A stretch of DNA of 63,877 bases, filler included, from Octopus bimaculoides (Eukaryota): assembly GCF_001194135.2 (NCBI RefSeq). It is 8 parts of 7 records of this genome, joined end to end, with 100 filler letters (N's around TTAATTAATTAA, not from the genome) between each part and the next. Parts side by side here need not be neighbours in the genome. Positions count along the whole stretch, not along the records: positions 24,699 to 35,457 come from NC_068998.1; 7 more parts are not named here. One strand, written 5' to 3'. The number at the start of each line of letters is the position of its first letter. The first letter of the stretch is position 1. A program made the position numbers and the translations under genes. Below the pieces are notes generated by a model. The model worked only from the letters and a program-made list of their open reading frames with translations. It was not told the DNA's origin and searched no databases. Shown here piece after piece: positions 24,970-35,433 of the stretch.

Positions 24970-25879
24970 TATTTTGATAAAACTGAAAAAATTAAGTTTC
25001 TTTACAAAGATTTCTTCTTCAGTTTTAAAGAAAATATATCGAGCAATCTCATCTATTTCTCTTCAAACTGAAATCACAAGGAATAAGATATCAGAAAGAA
25101 ATGAAAAATGATATGAGCTTGTATAAGGACTAGGGGAAAATATTTATTACTGGACACTTTTCTTGTTAAAAGAATAAAACCAGATACATAAGTTTTGACA
25201 TTGACAAGCTAATAAACATGTTCTCTACTTCCATGAAAAAGTTAAAATAGTAGGTACCTATAAATTATAGGCTCTATAAATTAGTTACTCTTTATATAAA
25301 ATATATTGACACATAACGCTGTAATTTATCAACTACATTAAAAAGGAACAGCAAACTCTAGAAACATTCCAACTAAATTGCTGATCCAACATACAAATGA
25401 GTTGTTGTCACTAATTTGTATTTTCTTGTTGACATTTGCAAATTCTAATTGTGTTCTTTGTTTGGACAACAAATGAAATTTGAAATATATTCAAAATGAG
25501 AATTATAACATCAAAATTCATTCTTAATGGATAAAAACAACTTTTCAAGACCACATGGGTTACATAAGGATAAATGACAGAATGGATTATATGACAACCA
25601 GCTTGTGATTGCCAAAGTATGGATTATAAGATAAGTAACGTATGGAATTTATGGTCATCATAATGTGGAAGATGTGACTTTTAAAAAAAAACTTTAACTT
25701 TTTTGGATATTAATTAAAAAGCTGTTACAAATAAAGTTTTAAAAAAATCTTCTGCTATTTTCATTTGGGGATAATAATTACTCATATGTATTCTTGGGAT
25801 ATATATGATGTTGTCTCCAGTATATATGGTGATGATACACACACACAAAATTTGTATAAATTATATATATGTATATATA

Positions 25880-27433
25880 TGCTGGCCAAAATAAGTTTAA
25901 GACTGATGATGACAGTTGTATTCCTTCATTAATATATTTTTAACAAAATTGTATAAAATTATTTACTTTTTACAGTTTATGTAGAACTTTTTTCTCTTTC
26001 AAATGATACAGGCATTATATATCTTTCTACAATTTCAATAATTTTAATGCGCAATTAATTCAAATGATTAAAAATTGTTGGCAAAATAAGTTTAAGACCG
26101 GACCAAGATTATGCAAATTAATAAACCAAATGGGTGGTCATATGGCTGGTCATACTGCACTGTTTTGTTTAATAATCGCACATTGTTACACATTAATTTG
26201 CTATGGGAAAGAGCATCATAGTACCAGCCCAGTTTCTAGATCAAAGATCATGTTGCTTCATCAGCAAAATGTGTTCTTCATGAACATTAGCAAGCAATTA
26301 AGATGCAGCAAAATGGCTTGCGTTCCAGATTGGCAAAGAACAGGCGCTCCGAGAAAAACAACAGTGCAGCTGGATTGGCAAAGCCATAGGCTCTCTGAAG
26401 GTAACTGAATGCTAACAGCAGTGGACATTTGCAAGTAATTATCTGATGAAACTGACATCAGCTTTATACCACAAATTGATAGAAACTGCTTAAAAGAATT
26501 TGGGCTGTTTGGCTGGATCACTCGAAAGAAACCGATAATTTCTGAGATGAACAGGTGGAAGCAAATCAAGTTTGCTAAAAGCCATATTGAATGGACGGAC
26601 AAAGACTGGTCAAAAGTTCTTTGGGGTGACGAATCACGCTTCTGCATCTTTGGATCAGATGGAAAGACTTATGTTAGACGCCATCCAACTAAAGAATTCC
26701 ATCCTAAGCATGTCAAGAAAACGGTGCAAGCAGGAGGTGGGGTGGGGTGGGGGAATGATGTAGGCCGCATTCAGCAGCTTAGGTGTCGGTTCAATTGTTA
26801 AAGTTGATGGCAGACTGAACAATGTTGGCTATCTGCAATTAGTAAATGAAAATGTGCTGCCATATTTAAATAATCAGATACCACTGGGATCTATTTTTCA
26901 GCAAGACAATTGCCCTGTTCATAAGGTGAGGAAAGTTTTGCAATATTTTCACTGCAGTAATATGGTGGTTATTGAGTGGCCTCCACAGAATCTGAAAGAA
27001 AATTTATGGAATTATGTTTCTAAAAGAGTTCATGCTAAAAAAAACCAACAAATTTGTCCCAATTATATAATTTTATTGAAGAAATATGGCAGAATATTCC
27101 AAGTAATTTTTGTGCTCATTTGTCAAACTCCATGTCCCATTGTTGTAAGGCCATAATTGAAAATAATAGCTATGGAACGAGATACAAATAATAAATTTTT
27201 GTTCGTTGATCATTTGTGCCATAAATTTTCAATTTAAGCAAAATATTTTAATCATTTGAATTAATTACACATTAAAGTTATTCAGATTGTACAAAGACAT
27301 ATAAGACATTCGAAAGAGAAAAAAGTTCTACATAAACTGTAAAAAGTAAAATAATTTTATACAGTTTTGTGAAAAATAAATTAACGAAGGAAAAGAACTG
27401 TCATCATCGGTCTTAGACTTATTTTGGCCAGTG
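25880..27433 (+). mobile_element. Complete Tc1-family DNA transposon (about 1.55 kb) with decayed transposase
   Basis: TA dinucleotides flank both ends. The roughly 190-bp TIRs read (CA)CTGGCCAAAATAAGTTTAAGAC and GTCTTAGACTTATTTTGGCCAGTG. Transposase motifs include RTGAPRKT, RKKP, WSKVLWGDESRF, IFQQDNCPVH and EWPPQ..ENLW. Confidence 0.95.
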
Positions 27434-27449
27434 TATTTTCTTTTTTTTT

Positions 27450-27655: not shown

Positions 27656-27727
<72 letters not shown>

Positions 27728-27892
27728 CATACAACAAGCTTTCAGTTTCCATCTTCCAAATCCACTCACAAGGCTTTGGCTGGCCTGAGGCTATAGTAGG
27801 AGACACTTGCCAAGGTACCATGCAGTGGAACTGAACTTGGAACAATGTGGTTGGGAAGCCAACTTCTTACCACACAGCCACTCTTGTGCCTA
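27450..27892 (-). mobile_element. Family-A SINE (full-length, diverged) with internal (CT)n
   Basis: Collinear with 9912-10322. Confidence 0.85.
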
Positions 27893-27959
27893 TACATACA
27901 TACATACATACATACATACATACATACATACATACATACATACACACACACACAGACAA

Positions 27960-28870
27960 AACACAAACCCCTTCAGGTAGATGGCCCTGCTCGATCTGTA
28001 GAAAAGGCGTAGGTAGAAACTCTATAAGCTGTACCCAGTGTCAGCTATGGACACATAAGGGGTGCAGCAATATCAAAGGAAGACTAACTAGGAAGTTTAG
28101 TTTTTGTATGTGGCAGATGTTCAGGAGCAATAAACACTGAAAATGTGCAGAAAGCAACTTCTGCCACATTCCAAGGAGAAAAACTAGAGGTAGTTGATAG
28201 CTTCTGCTATCTAGGTGACCAAGTTAGTAGTGGGGGAGGCTGCACTGAAAATGTAGCTGCTAGAATAAGAATAGCCTGGGCAAAGTTCAGAGAGCTCTTA
28301 CCTCTGCTGGTGACAAAGGGCCTCTCGCTCAGAGTAAAAGGCAGACTGTATGACGCATGTGTATGAACAGCCATGCTACATGGCAGTGAAACATAGGCCT
28401 TGACTGCTGAGGACATGCGTAAGCTCACAAGGAATGAAGCTAGTATGCTCTGATGGATGTGTAATGTCAGTGTGCATACTCAACAGAGTGTAAGTATCTT
28501 GAAAGAAAAGTTGGACCTAAGAAGCATCAGTTGTGGTGTGCAAGAGAGACGATTGCACTGGTTTGGTCATGTGGCAAGAATGGATGAGGATAGCTGTGTG
28601 AAAAAATGCCACACCCTAGCAGTTGAGGGAACCTGTGGAAGTGGTAGACCCAGAAAGAACTGGGATGAGGTGGTGAAGCACAACCTTCGAACATTAAGCC
28701 TTACCGAGGCAGTGACTTCTGACCGAGACCTTTGGAAATATGCTGTGCGTGAGAAGACCTGGCAAGACAAGTGAGTCCATAATCTGAGGCCTCTGCCAGA
28801 GGTGTAGCCAGCCCACTTCTGTGTACCTTTCCTTCATGGACACTAAACCCCACTTCCGAAGACCAGTTGA
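27960..28870 (+). mobile_element. RTEX/RTE LINE fragment with Cys-rich finger and RT C-terminus
   Basis: Motifs include GRWPCSICRKGVGRNSISCTQCQLWTHKGCS, EVVDSFCYLGD, AARIRIAWAKFRELLPLL, KGRLYDACV and QERRLHWFGHVARMDE. Confidence 0.9.
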
Positions 28871-29300: not shown

Positions 29301-29376
<76 letters not shown>

Positions 29377-29399
29377 ATATATATGTATATGTGTGTATC

Positions 29400-31545: not shown

Positions 31546-32492
31546 ACCTCTCCTTAGGATAATATACATAGCCACACAGACAGTTTATCCTATATTTGTG
31601 TCATATTTTGTTTCTTATTCTTGTTTCTTATTCTTGTTACCATGATGATTTATGCTCTAAATATTTTATGTTAAATCAGAGCTATTTTTAGTAAATGGCA
31701 CTGAACACTCTGAATGGAACTTCAGCTTTCTAACAACTTCTTTGTTATTGAGCCATCCAGATCAATCTATTCAACATTAAAAATAGAGTATTTATTAATT
31801 GAAGCTGCTTTTGTCTACAATTCATTTATTTATTCAATGTTTACCTGAATTTTCTATATCATCAGACAGACAGACATATAGATAAATAGAGGGATGGATA
31901 GATAGTATATGAAGATAGATTAGACAGACAGACAGACAAATAGAAAGATAGAATAGAAAGATAGGTCAGACAGACAGATAGATAGAAAGATAGATTAGAC
32001 AGACAGACAGATGGATAAAAAAAAACCCCCAGAAAGATTAGATTGATAGATAGATGTGTCCATTCAAATTTTTAACATGTATTCTTGAGTACTTTATCTT
32101 ATTTCATGCATACCAGGTGGGGCTGGTATGCATGGGCGACTGCTGTCATTCTTTCAGTTTTAATTCTAATGTGAACAACATTACGCATCGGAAACTTTCC
32201 ATCTTTAGGGCCACCACAGCAGAATGGTGTGTCAGTGGATGTGTTGACTGACATAACGAATGTCAGGAAGTGAAACTCTTGATAAAAAACAATAAGGTGA
32301 CAGGTCCAAGGTATATAAAAATACACATTTACTGTTCAATTAGCAGTTCATGCATATGCTCCTCTTTGGTTAATTTATACTGCATACAAAAATAAAAACA
32401 TACTACATACATACAACTGCTTACAAAAATAGGGATTAATGTATAATTTTTTTCTATGTTCATAATTTTTTGTTTACAATATTATAAAAAAT

Positions 32493-33125
32493 ATGCCACC
32501 AAAGAAAAGACATAATCTGTCCAGAAACAAGTACAAAGCAAGGATGATTGTAGAAAATTGAAGAGAGAAGCAAGATGAGATTTTCTCAAGATCAGCAAAG
32601 GGATGCTGCTGGACATTAGACAGAGTCTGAAGAGAGAATGGAGATGAGACTTTCCCAAGATCAGCAAATGCATGCTGCAGCACTTAATGCTGGATCATTA
32701 AATCAATGTTTTAATGATTAGACAGAGGCCCAATAGAATAGCTCTTAGAAACAAACTATGTACAAATTCGTTCTTCACAACTCATGGAGCTGTTTTCTGA
32801 TATGATCCATCCCATTCTTATAAAAATGATAATTCTGTCCAAATTGTCATTTCTGCAAAGCTTTAAAATTTTTCAAATGAAACAAATGGTATGTGCTGCT
32901 CAGGCGGTCAGGTAAGATTGCCAGCACTACCAGCTCCTCCTCAACCTCTTATGGATCTTCTGGAAGGCACTTCCATCCAGTCAAAGGATTTTCTGAACAA
33001 TATCAGACAAGACAAATCTGCATTTCAAATGACATTGTTTACTGCATCTAAGAAGATACTTAAACATGAATTTACGCCGATGTCAAAGTTCAAGGGCAAG
33101 TCTATCACCTCATTGGTTCCCACTT
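32493..33125 (+). mobile_element. Helitron Rep protein N-terminal remnant
   Basis: An MPPKKR start and repeated charged segments are followed by C.FCKALKF..E.NGMCCSGGQVRLPALPAPPQPLMDLLEG...FLNNIRQ..SAFQMT, which is typical of the Helitron Rep N-terminus. Confidence 0.85.
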
Positions 33126-34034: not shown

Positions 34035-35308
34035 TTATCTACAATGACAAAGGGATGATGGACACCAAAAGGAGAAACAGTTACGATTGCACCATTGGTT
34101 AAAGTGAACATTTCCTGCATGGAGGCCAATTGCTTTACATCGGTTCACACCTGGAGAATATTGTGAGTTGTGAAGAGGGAGGGCAACATTTGTTTGAGAT
34201 GACAGGCTTGGCAATCGATTAGTTAATGGCAAATGTATTGGTTCTGCTATATGTGACGATAAACTTTGTTCCACCACATGGTTGTTACTGGATGTATAGA
34301 AAGGAGCATAACTTAATTCTCGTCGGCATTGACACAAGTTTGATGGACAGTAATTAGCATTACAATTTACAAAACACCAGTCATCCATTCCACCAGATAA
34401 AAGTATAATTGCACGGCATTTTAAAACTGGCTTTATAGGCCATGTTGCTGGAATTCTTGAAGTAGCTGGAGGTTTGAAATAATGTTCACCCCACCAACCT
34501 AAGTTAAACCGTCCAACAGGCGAAGCAACAATTTGAGATACCTTATTTACTTGTTTCCTCACAGTCTTTGGCTTATGACATGGCTTGGAAGATAACAAAG
34601 CTTTTGGCATTGCCGTTGCAACAGGAGATCTTTGAGCAGTAATTTTATGATCTCTGACAAACCAATTTTTCCCAGGAGAAACTGGGTTTGTAAACATTTT
34701 AAAAGATTTTTTTGGTAATATCACAGTTGGTATAGAGGCTGTTGTCTCAATCAATTTTCTGTTTTTGGAATAAATTTTTTCAGCTGACATGTCAGCACGT
34801 GGTTTACTTATTTTCAATCTCCTGTGAGAGTTTCTGTTTGGTGGTACAGCAAGACTGGTTAGTTTGGGAATTGATTTCTCAGTTGGTAATGATAGAGTAG
34901 ATTGTGTTATTTTAGAATTGTACCTAAAAATTTTTTTACTTTTGTCAGCATTTTTGTGTCCCACATCTTTGTTCAAGAGATATTGATTTTTTCCATTCTT
35001 AAGAGATAGTTGATTAACCCAATCAAATAAATTAACTTTGCGTGTTTTCACATTTCCTTTTGGTTGTTCTAATTCCGTAGCTGATGTTGTTGGTCTAAAA
35101 GTTGGTATTGTTTCTGAGGTTATTTTAACTCCAACAGTGCCCTTCTCATCTATAGTTTCACTATTTACTTTCCTTCGAGATATGGAAGAGTAATCATTTT
35201 GGTCAGAAAGTGGTTCGATTGTGATGTCAGCACAATTGTAAAATTCTTCTTGGGGACCACAACCAAGGCAGAATATACCAGATTTATCATCTTTGTCCCA
35301 TGTATTTC
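34035..35308 (-). CDS. Terminal exon of an AA15-like lytic polysaccharide monooxygenase with basic linker and two Cys-rich putative carbohydrate-binding modules
   Basis: A polypyrimidine acceptor TTTCTATTTCAG|35308 (phase 1) begins an uninterrupted reading frame of about 424 codons ending in TAA at 34035. It starts GNTWDKDDKSGIFCLGCGPQEEFYNCADITI (AA15 C-terminal motif GN.W..C.GCGPQE.F..CADI) and ends with two C-x13/15-C-x3-C-x4-CP-x3-C-x-C modules. Confidence 0.85.
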
Positions 35309-35390
35309 CTGAAATAGAAAGAAAAAAATCTTTCAAATATTTCATTACCTATCATCTTAGATTGATAAATATTTTGTTAATAGCAATTGT

Positions 35391-35433
<43 letters not shown>

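Follow-up and report, generated by a model that had tools for sequence, protein, structure and literature searches.

We describe the last exon of Octopus bimaculoides LOC106876405, a gene for a putatively secreted AA15 LPMO that most likely cuts chitin. The enzyme appears to be the counterpart of the group I enzyme LPMO15-1 of insects, with a likely part in turnover of the animal's own chitin, and we consider this reading as a whole probable. LOC106876405 is an annotated, uncharacterised member of an already described family. The first-pass annotation, made from the DNA alone, had presented the exon as the window's strongest candidate for a little-studied system; in kind, this does not hold, since the architecture has been published as that of insect group I LPMO15-1 (PMC9156745) and mollusc AA15 genes were reported in 2018 (PMC5823890). 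Literature searches on cephalopod LPMOs and on LOC106876405 returned nothing relevant, no characterised mollusc LPMO was found in the literature searched, and the search for data on the expression, protein or activity of mollusc AA15s, those of cephalopods included, was equally negative.

Terminal exon and gene model

The exon lies in a window of 63,877 nucleotides (the whole stretch of DNA that was analysed), on a 10,759-nt piece that is identical (100%) over its whole length to O. bimaculoides CM046618.1 (GCA_001194135.2), in keeping with the cephalopod origin assigned to it earlier. Three features define it:

34035..35308, minus strand: terminal coding exon (exon 3) of LOC106876405, residues 186-609 plus stop
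34035-34037, minus strand: stop codon TAA, end of exon 3
35309..35328, minus strand: 3' splice site of intron 2, a polypyrimidine tract and CAG acceptor, TTTTTTTCTTTCTATTTCAG

The boundaries 34035-35308, given at first pass for a 424-codon exon with a clean acceptor, are exact; the exon is terminal, its acceptor is strong, and its strand, then unstated, is minus. Exon 3 has 1274 nt, made up of 2 nt from a Gly codon divided by the intron, 423 further codons and a stop, and starts at 35308 after TTTTTTTCTTTCTATTTCAG; intron 2 is phase 1, and the junction divides the codon of Gly186. The translation opens (G)NTWDKDDKSGIFCLGCGPQEEFYNCADITI, in agreement with the GNTWD read previously, and is 100% identical to residues 186-609 of O. 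bimaculoides LOC106876405. In the ORF listing of the piece, the corresponding ORF (34035..35345, minus strand) runs to 436 aa, and the next by length to 139 aa. In a piece with 36% GC, where any codon is a stop with probability 0.069, 436 open codons have a probability of ~3e-14 (~7e-10 corrected for all positions), which excludes a chance ORF.

LOC106876405 has three coding exons, and reconstruction of its GT-AG junctions yields the exact 609-aa protein. The window does not reach exons 1 and 2, which are 5-10 kb past the edge of the piece, within CM046618.1:55,494,410-55,525,873, and the introns are ~5 kb long; these upstream exons belong to a computational gene model, which gene models made independently for Argonauta, Haliotis, Patella, and Biomphalaria corroborate. 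The exon start GNTWDKD is also present in a second Octopus species (L002) and in fragments P0004 and P0005. Sequences P0006-P0009 have the first ~30 residues in common with exon 3 and then continue into unrelated, module-free tails. Canonical AATAAA was absent within 2 kb downstream of the stop codon, where ATTAAA alone was found, 1.3 and 1.9 kb away.

AA15 catalytic domain and predicted copper site

Exon 3 begins with the end of the catalytic domain:

35217..35308, minus strand: end of the AA15 catalytic domain (31 residues, 186-216), containing the GCGPQEEFYNCADITI motif and aligned with 5msz 171-192
35241..35249, minus strand: Glu206-Glu207-Phe208, second-sphere Glu and axial Phe (E-x-F), by alignment with Td Glu182/Tyr184

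The full LOC106876405 protein matched Pfam LPMO_10 (PF03067) over residues 25-214 (E, 6.5e-21; 76 bits vs a cut-off of 23) and aligned unbroken by sequence with Thermobia AA15 (PDB 5msz) over residues 25-216 (E, 1.7e-53), and its predicted fold matched 5msz as well (E, 2.7e-23; TM, 0.92; rmsd, 1.6 Å; 47% identity). Exon 3 alone gave zero Pfam matches, even at E<=10, because it encodes only 31 residues of the catalytic domain and not because homology is absent; its best PDB match was Thermobia domestica AA15 (5msz; E, 0.019), on the motif GCGPQEE[FY]xNCADIxI. The first-pass annotation had recognised AA15 from this C-terminal motif, and would have abandoned the assignment had the gene lacked either an LPMO_10 hit or the N-terminal His-brace residues. 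The full gene model contains both, the latter in exons 1 and 2.

The catalytic domain is 192 residues long (25-216) and mostly encoded outside the window, which cannot itself show the His brace because the residues concerned are encoded in exons 1 and 2. In the gene model, His25 directly follows a hydrophobic leader (MNPESISSIFVVLIVTTSIHQVLP) and aligns with Td His1; its column holds His in 122/122 ungapped relatives. Ala111-Asn112-His113, encoded in exon 2, aligns with Td Ala89-Pro90-His91, so that His113 corresponds to TdHis91. Glu206-x-Phe208 aligns with Td Glu182-x-Tyr184, which confirms the earlier placing of this segment at the second-sphere Glu and axial Phe position, and among the closest relatives the two columns hold Glu in 124/125 and Phe in 121/125. 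Residues 25-216 include 10 Cys; ten are conserved in AA15 (Sabbadin et al. 2018, PMC5823890). The AF2 model has pLDDT 90-98 in the AA15 domain (>=90 in the exon-3 tail, 186-216), and the tail has a dN/dS of 0.05 vs the second Octopus species. Judged by sequence, LOC106876405 encodes a secreted, copper-dependent AA15 LPMO, for which we infer signal-peptide cleavage and copper binding.

With T. domestica TdAA15A (5msz) and TdAA15B the enzyme has in common the fold, the His-brace residues, an Ala ahead of the second His, and ten Cys. The axial residue is Tyr in TdAA15A, which is also active on cellulose, and Phe in the octopus protein, as in the chitin-specific TdAA15B (PMC5823890). An axial Phe goes with chitin specificity in AA15 and AA10 enzymes (PMC5823890), and chitin appears the most likely substrate of the octopus enzyme. 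The Thermobia AA15s, which are gut enzymes, consist of the catalytic domain only, whereas the octopus protein is multi-part.

Linker, modules and spacer

The remainder of exon 3 encodes the following:

34419..35216, minus strand: basic linker, predicted disordered (residues 217-482, 266 aa), from composition and AF2
34419..34520, minus strand: conserved Trp/Pro-rich stretch ahead of module 1 (residues 449-482), from alignment A2
34326..34418, minus strand: 6-Cys module 1 (residues 483-513, CRAIILLSGGMDDWCFVNCNANYCPSNLCQC), C-X13-C-X3-C-X4-C-X4-C-X-C, found by regex
34140..34325, minus strand: S/T/P-rich spacer of 62 aa (residues 514-575) dividing module 1 from module 2, from composition
34041..34139, minus strand: 6-Cys module 2 (residues 576-608, CKAIGLHAGNVHFNQWCNRNCFSFWCPSSLCHC), C-X15-C-X3-C-X4-C-X4-C-X-C, followed by Arg609 and the stop

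The linker has a pI of 10.46, 18.8% K+R, 27% S+T+P, a net charge of +32, and a single Cys. The first-pass description of it as Lys/Arg/Ser/Thr/Pro-rich stands (pI 10.5), but the length of ~290 aa given there does not (266 aa measured). In the AF2 model, pLDDT is <50 over most of residues 243-477 and secondary structure is almost nil; dN/dS vs the second Octopus species is 0.33, with the reading frame preserved. The Trp/Pro-rich stretch is without predicted fold (pLDDT <50 up to residue 477), and its residues P449, G456, W457, W475, P479, L481, and K482 are invariant in cephalopods and gastropods (alignment A2). The spacer starts with a dibasic RR514-515 and has pLDDT <50 for residues 519-572 and a dN/dS of 0.45.

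The same order of parts was found in the mollusc orthologues (Argonauta hians LOC115222289, Haliotis spp., Patella caerulea, and Biomphalaria glabrata LOC106065474), whose catalytic domains are 70-84% identical to that of the octopus. Module 1 is nearly invariant among these long-linker proteins (GGMD.WC..NCNAN[FY]CP). Their linkers extend from 254 aa (Argonauta) to ~685 aa (Biomphalaria) and their spacers from 62 to 273 aa; linker composition is retained (pI 11.0-11.8) but sequence is not, and cephalopod and gastropod linkers can barely be aligned. A basic linker with predicted disorder is thus a property kept in both cephalopods and gastropods; it goes beyond published descriptions, as does the 62-aa spacer separating the two repeats.

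Both Cys-rich modules proposed at first pass are real, and they are tandem only loosely, because 62 aa lie between them. An arthropod-only module HMM, built from 54 arthropod-type two-module proteins selected by regex and length, found module 1 with 12.9 bits (i-E, 4e-6) and module 2 with 21.4 bits (i-E, 8.6e-9); on the octopus protein it totalled 29.2 bits vs a maximum of 8.1 in 2000 shuffles of the exon protein. By this profile, the octopus modules and the paired 6-Cys repeats that define insect group I LPMO15-1 are homologous, so that the modules are not new. Both are strand-helix-strand in the full-length AF2 model (pLDDT, 73-89; module 1, 73-83). Module 2, modelled from the module alignment (A1), reached pLDDT 91.5, with strands at 2-4 and 32-34 and a helix at 12-22; Cys18 and Cys22 (CxxxC) are placed on the helix and Cys32 and Cys34 (CxC) on a strand. 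Module 1 is acidic (pI 4.2) and has a dN/dS of 0.10 vs the second Octopus species; that of module 2 is 0.45, from 34 codons only.

With the CS-alpha/beta peptides (insect and mollusc defensins, scorpion K+ channel toxins, and the scyllatoxin scaffold) the module has in common six Cys and a predicted CxxxC helix and CxC strand; unlike them, it is a domain inside enzymes rather than a free cationic peptide. The disulfides of the CS-alpha/beta fold pair C1-C4, C2-C5, and C3-C6. It is comparable to CBM14/peritrophin-A as a small 6-Cys module occurring in multiple copies on chitin-acting enzymes and stand-alone proteins, but its Cys spacing differs, and Pfam CBM_14 was unmatched even at E<=10, both by the exon and by 48 individual modules. 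The insect group I repeats are unrelated to CBM14 (Qu et al., PMC9156745). Searched against PDB sequences, the module profile gave five weak matches (E, 0.019-2.8), all to cysteine-stabilised alpha/beta toxins or scaffolds. A Foldseek search of the PDB with the module model, 35 residues long, returned 0 matches, probably because the model is too short, and this counts neither for nor against CS-alpha/beta. Pfam searches with 48 individual modules yielded one stray zf-NF-X1 match (E, 0.0012) and nothing else, and CBM14, defensin, and toxin families were rejected at the sequence level on this ground. A literature search for AA15 with 'cysteine-stabilized' returned nothing relevant. The predicted cysteine-stabilised alpha/beta (defensin/scorpion-toxin-like) pattern of the repeat, its lack of a Pfam family, and its presence in a GH18 chitinase go beyond published descriptions.

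The module profile matched 775 proteins at E<=1e-3 among 1.84 billion. Its partners are AA15 domains, and many of the remaining matches are last-exon fragments of AA15 genes. Among the 150 top matches listed, 142 were new, and 92 of these were without an AA15 match; another Pfam enzyme domain, GH18, was found in 2 of the 42 longer AA15-free matches. Three module copies lie between the catalytic domains of one of the two, a GH18 chitinase (P0137), and a stand-alone protein (P0128) has at least 20. Wide occurrence of the module outside AA15 proteins was largely rejected, the named matches that were looked up being AA15 last-exon fragments (Littorina and Pomacea).

Relationship to insect LPMO15-1

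Insect group I consists of an AA15 domain with two repeats of the form C-X15-C-X3-C-X6-9-C-X4-C-X1-C (Qu et al. 2022, PMC9156745); these lie side by side within one motif of 74 aa, in a C-terminal stretch of ~120 aa (PMC9156745). The octopus protein has a putative signal peptide, an AA15 domain, and a pair of 6-Cys repeats towards its C-terminus, the parts of TcLPMO15-1, LmLPMO15-1, and OfLPMO15-1. It has ~57% identity to group I in the catalytic domain and the Ala-Asn-His and Glu-x-Phe motifs in common with it; over residues 25-57 it hardly differs from Tribolium LPMO15-1 (HGRLMDPPARNSMWRFGFPNPVNYNDNEL[Y/F]CGG). In a neighbor-joining (NJ) tree of catalytic domains (192 columns, 200 bootstraps), the mollusc long-linker clade (Octopus, Argonauta, Haliotis, and Patella) was monophyletic in 100% of bootstraps and sister to pancrustacean group I in 82%, which is moderate support; the transmembrane AA15s of group II were separate in 91%.

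The octopus linker, at 266 aa, is strongly basic and that of Tribolium, at 45 aa, near neutral, and the gap between repeats is 62 aa as against 3 aa. The third Cys spacing is 4 in place of the 6-9 of insect group I, a value common to other lophotrochozoan and chelicerate copies, and the octopus protein, unlike insect group I, has a conserved Trp-rich stretch before module 1 and one linker Cys. At 393 aa and with its repeats non-contiguous, the octopus C-terminal stretch departs from the length and contiguity described for group I; this is a difference of length and architecture, not a loss of parts. From its domain order and catalytic-domain phylogeny, the octopus protein appears to be the molluscan counterpart of arthropod group I LPMO15-1.

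Proposed role and alternatives

Beetle and locust LPMO15-1 is needed for the breakdown of old chitinous cuticle at the moult (PMC9156745), and the chitinous cuticle of octopus suckers is periodically shed (PMC3672162). The octopus enzyme may be pictured as beads on a string: signal peptide, catalytic domain, basic linker, 6-Cys module, spacer, and second 6-Cys module. Its two CS-alpha/beta-like modules would be putative docking sites for chitin or a chitin-protein matrix, and the long cationic linker could provide reach and perhaps added electrostatic adhesion. Crystalline chitin chains would be oxidised (at C1, as in characterised AA15s) at the Cu(I) His-brace site, whose axial residue is Phe, and thereby opened to GH18 chitinases. 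The likely role would be turnover or remodelling of the animal's own chitin, presumably in the sucker lining, which is shed periodically, or in the beak, radula, gut cuticle, or stylets. The first-pass annotation had suggested that the enzyme might be tethered to chitin of beak, radula, or sucker, or might digest prey.

An LPMO of the salivary or digestive glands might instead attack the exoskeleton of crustacean prey. Crustaceans are in the octopus diet, the Thermobia AA15s are gut enzymes (PMC5823890), and nothing in the sequence fixes the tissue. We nevertheless consider a digestive role unlikely: gut-type AA15s (Thermobia and insect group III) have the catalytic domain only, while the octopus protein is built like group I, falls with the moulting clade, and has orthologues in grazing gastropods (Haliotis, Patella, and Biomphalaria) that do not eat crustaceans. 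A purely structural or matrix role in association with chitin, on a non-catalytic LPMO-like scaffold whose enzymatic function has been lost, is very improbable given that His1, His113, Glu206, and Phe208 are intact and the AA15 tail is under strong purifying selection (dN/dS, 0.05), even though the very long low-complexity linker recalls matrix or mucin-like proteins and orthologues have automatically been named mucin-5AC-like and FLO10.

The 6-Cys modules could also be read as defensin-like effectors freed by cleavage at basic sites, the exon then encoding part of a bifunctional immune pro-protein. In favour of this are the CxxxC...CxC pattern with predicted helix and strand, the toxins and scaffolds that make up all five weak PDB profile matches (best E, 0.019), and the dibasic RR514-515 directly after module 1. 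Yet the insect modules adjoin each other without processing sites, module 1 is acidic (pI 4.2) where defensins are cationic, and no Pfam defensin family was matched significantly. Chitin-binding domains are normally positioned between GH18 catalytic domains, and module copies sit in just that place. We regard release of effectors as highly improbable. With introns of ~5 kb, exon 3 might have come from a separate gene and been joined to the AA15 exons by the annotation pipeline, a chimera to which we give almost no credence: the AA15 domain spans the junction of exons 2 and 3, with LPMO_10 (25-214) and 5msz (25-216) unbroken across it, exon 3 begins with the last strands of the AA15 fold, and the same architecture was predicted independently in Argonauta, Haliotis, Patella, and Biomphalaria.

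We favour a secreted AA15 LPMO acting on the animal's own chitin. More tentatively, and with considerable doubt on our part, the 6-Cys repeat could be an unclassified, ancient protostome CS-alpha/beta chitin-binding module, common to AA15 LPMOs, at least one GH18 chitinase, and stand-alone proteins of 20 or more copies, and mollusc LPMO15-1 may at the same time drive the periodic shedding or the remodelling of cephalopod chitin, for instance in sucker lining, beak, and radula. We know of no account of the enzymatic renewal of cephalopod chitinous structures. If the 6-Cys module binds chitin on a defensin-like scaffold, it would found a new carbohydrate-binding module family. The conserved cationic linker, predicted to be disordered, lends itself to testing how the action of an LPMO on an insoluble substrate depends on the length and charge of its linker. 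If the octopus enzyme acts like beetle and locust LPMO15-1, chitin turnover would already have included an oxidative step before the ecdysozoan and lophotrochozoan lineages split, and oxidative chitin turnover of the kind seen at the moult would be common to Ecdysozoa and Lophotrochozoa rather than an arthropod speciality.

The exon at window 34035-35308 (minus strand), the last of LOC106876405, lies within a 436-aa open reading frame (ORF) (34035..35345, minus) that stands out in the ORF listing of its 10,759-nt piece (runner-up, 139 aa); at its 36% GC, the chance expectation for an open stretch this long anywhere in the piece is ~7e-10. The first 12 codons of this ORF are intronic, a strong minus-strand acceptor (TTTTTTTCTTTCTATTTCAG/GAAATACATGGGAC) fixes the exon start at 35308, and the stop is TAA at 34035-34037; the exon coordinates of the first-pass annotation were thus exact, as was its peptide, GNTWD...CLGCGPQEEFYNCADITI. 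Translated, the exon matches at 100% identity residues 186-609 of the 609-aa gene product, P0001 ("uncharacterized protein LOC106876405 [Octopus bimaculoides]"; UniRef label, chitin-binding type-4 domain), and the complete piece is identical to GCA_001194135.2 CM046618.1. Three coding exons, found by GT-AG junction testing in the O. bimaculoides locus (L001), rebuild the 609-aa protein.

Coding exons of LOC106876405
L001 10001-10177: exon 1, outside the window
L001 15232-15610: exon 2, outside the window
L001 20191-21464: exon 3, window 35308-34035 (minus)

Since exons 1 and 2 lie outside, the window contains the last exon alone; the exons for the signal peptide and for the two histidines that ligate copper are past the piece edge. 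The Gly186 codon is interrupted by intron 2, a phase 1 intron. The 2 kb downstream of the stop contain no canonical AATAAA. The sole poly(A) signal candidates were ATTAAA at window 32710-32715 and 32159-32164 (minus; 1.3 and 1.9 kb from the stop).

Other elements in the piece (window positions)
25877-27436: decayed Tc1/mariner-type DNA transposon, ~1.56 kb
27656-27722: (TCTC)n microsatellite
27847-28774 (plus): probable decayed retrotransposon
27892-27952: (ATAC)15 microsatellite
29305-29390: (AT)43 microsatellite
31878-32017: imperfect (ATAG)n array
35395-35429: (AC)17 microsatellite in intron 2, ~90 nt upstream of the acceptor

The transposon has inverted terminal repeats of ~210 bp (25877-26087 and 27232-27436, 82-92% complementary) enclosing broken ORFs at 26547-26801(+), which matches Sleeping Beauty transposase (5cr4; E, 9.9e-6), and 26854-27156(+); it had no Pfam match. 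In the probable retrotransposon, ORF 27847-28140 (+) has a PHD-finger-like match (PF00628; E, 3.3e-5), and ORFs 28145-28366 and 28457-28774 (+), without Pfam matches, presumably resemble the C terminus of LINE reverse transcriptase.

Searched against Pfam, the exon translation alone had no match; its top PDB sequence match was the Thermobia domestica AA15, through the motif GCGPQEE[FY]xNCADIxI (E, 0.019). Full-length P0001 matched LPMO_10 (residues 25-214; E, 6.5e-21) and the T. domestica TdAA15A structure 5msz (residues 25-216; E, 1.7e-53), and its AlphaFold2 (AF2) model superposed on 5msz with a TM of 0.92 (rmsd, 1.6 Å; 47% identity). The AA15 LPMO identity proposed in the first pass therefore holds for the full protein, for which the sequence-based prediction is unambiguous. 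His25, directly after a hydrophobic leader, aligned with Td His1, Ala111-Asn-His113 with Ala89-Pro-His91, and Glu206-Glu-Phe208 with Glu182-Glu-Tyr184; among the ~125 closest relatives, the His25 column was His in 122/122, His113 His in 127/128, Glu206 Glu in 124/125, and Phe208 Phe in 121/125, in agreement with the earlier placing of E-x-F at the second-sphere Glu and axial Phe. The catalytic domain has ten cysteines, the number conserved in AA15 (PMC5823890). An axial Phe is associated with chitin-specific activity (TdAA15B) and an axial Tyr with cellulose-active forms (PMC5823890), so the octopus E-x-F points to chitin.

Beyond this domain are two six-cysteine modules.

Modules of P0001
Residues 483-513: module 1, C-X13-C-X3-C-X4-C-X4-C-X-C
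Residues 576-608: module 2, C-X15-C-X3-C-X4-C-X4-C-X-C

By definition, insect group I LPMO15-1 enzymes have a signal peptide followed by an AA15 domain and a C-terminal stretch of ~120 aa that bears two repeats (C-X15-C-X3-C-X6-9-C-X4-C-X1-C), and RNAi showed that cuticle turnover at moult requires the gene in both Tribolium and Locusta (Qu et al. 2022, PMC9156745). Among the 127 proteins retrieved with the octopus protein, most share the pattern (two copies in insects/crustaceans, one in chelicerates, one to five in other molluscs/annelids). An HMM based exclusively on 54 two-module proteins of arthropod type, chosen by pattern and length, scored the octopus protein at 29.2 bits in total (module 2, 21.4; module 1, 12.9), whereas the best of 2000 shuffles of the exon protein sequence reached 8.1 bits. 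The Cys-rich modules are real, and from these scores we conclude that they are homologous to the insect repeats.

In a neighbor-joining tree (192 catalytic-domain columns, 200 bootstraps), Octopus, Argonauta, Haliotis, and Patella formed a clade (100% of bootstraps) sister to a pancrustacean two-module clade (bootstrap 82%). The latter includes P0090 (Tribolium TC002263, 337 aa), which we infer to be TcLPMO15-1, matching its reported length. Outside this grouping fell other lophotrochozoan AA15s, the single-module proteins of chelicerates, and a clade whose C-terminal segment is hydrophobic, fitting group II. There is moderate evidence that the octopus gene represents the mollusc counterpart of LPMO15-1. 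Four retrieved proteins (P0006-P0009) open with the same exon-boundary peptide, GNTWDKDDNSGVFCLGCGPQEEFYNCADI, followed by unrelated basic tails that lack Cys modules; these could be terminal exons from other molluscs, belonging to a separate AA15 paralogue.

No Pfam family covers the module. A profile of 48 diverse modules, searched against 1.84 billion cluster representatives, retrieved 775 proteins at E<=1e-3; among the top 150, an AA15 domain was present in 50 of 142 new proteins, and the rest were often short, the named ones looked up being last-exon fragments of AA15 genes. P0137, a fragment, has three copies in an S/T-rich region between two GH18 chitinase domains, and P0128 (1459 aa) has 20 or more copies without any other Pfam domain. 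P0209 gave partial module matches, and among the members of its cluster is a protein of the haptophyte Phaeocystis cordata. From the module alignment, AF2 confidently (pLDDT 91.5) predicted strand 2-4, helix 12-22, bearing the CxxxC pair, and strand 32-34, bearing the CxC pair; such a helix and strand are the signature of the cysteine-stabilised alpha/beta (CS-alpha/beta) motif of defensins and scorpion toxins. This very short model had no Foldseek match. The profile had five weak matches among PDB sequences (E, 0.019-2.8), all of the CS-alpha/beta fold class (TcoKIK, beta-KTx 14.3, scorpine, and two scyllatoxin-scaffold miniproteins). A CS-alpha/beta fold is a reasonable but unproven lead, and the domain context suggests a chitin-binding role.

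The octopus linker is Lys/Arg/Ser/Thr/Pro-rich, as first described (K+R 18.8%, S+T+P 27%; pI 10.5, net +32), and is 266 aa long rather than ~290 aa. Tribolium LPMO15-1, in contrast, has a near-neutral 45-aa linker and repeats separated by 3 aa instead of 62 aa. The basic character of the octopus linker, not its sequence, is common to mollusc orthologues.

Linkers of mollusc orthologues
Argonauta: 254 aa, pI 11.6
Haliotis: 408-415 aa, pI 11.7-11.8
Patella: 407 aa, pI 11.0
Biomphalaria: about 685 aa

AF2 predicted pLDDT <50 and almost no secondary structure in most of 243-477 and in 519-572 (catalytic domain, 90-98; modules, 73-89). We compared the exon with that on L002, a Logan contig from a second Octopus species.

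dN/dS between the two Octopus species
AA15 tail: 0.05
Module 1: 0.10
Linker: 0.33
Spacer: 0.45
Module 2: 0.45 (34 codons only)

The reading frame is maintained over the exon, which, with the linker dN/dS, indicates a translated, weakly constrained linker. Within the linker, a Trp/Pro-rich stretch just N-terminal to module 1 (residues 449-482, window 34419-34520) is conserved from cephalopods to gastropods (invariant P449, G456, W457, W475, P479, L481, and K482); unstructured in the AF2 prediction despite this conservation, it may provide further aromatic contacts to chitin. The lone linker cysteine, Cys429 (KPCHKPK, window 34578-34580), also occurs in Argonauta, Haliotis, and Patella and is absent from the Biomphalaria linker; presumably unpaired, this residue might link two molecules through a disulfide.

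On the best-supported reading, the product is a predicted secreted, Cu-dependent, chitin-oxidising LPMO; its anchors would be two small modules, locked by disulfides and joined to the catalytic domain by a long, cationic, flexible tether. Its substrate is likely the octopus's own chitin, with beak, radula, gut cuticle, and stylets among the candidates. The sucker lining is a further one, being a chitinous cuticle that is shed periodically (PMC3672162). Prey digestion, also raised in the first-pass annotation, is less likely because gut-type AA15s lack C-terminal modules and orthologues are present in grazing gastropods.

Overall, the first-pass observation was confirmed and its interpretation supported. 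A literature search turned up no publications on LPMOs of molluscs, cephalopods included, and nothing that mentions the LOC106876405 locus. Public annotation already lists the gene, as an uncharacterised protein with an LPMO domain. The occurrence of AA15 in molluscs has been published, as has the combination of AA15 with two repeats; the additions, of modest interest, are a basic linker specific to the lineage, the separation of the two repeats, and a likely fold for the repeat.
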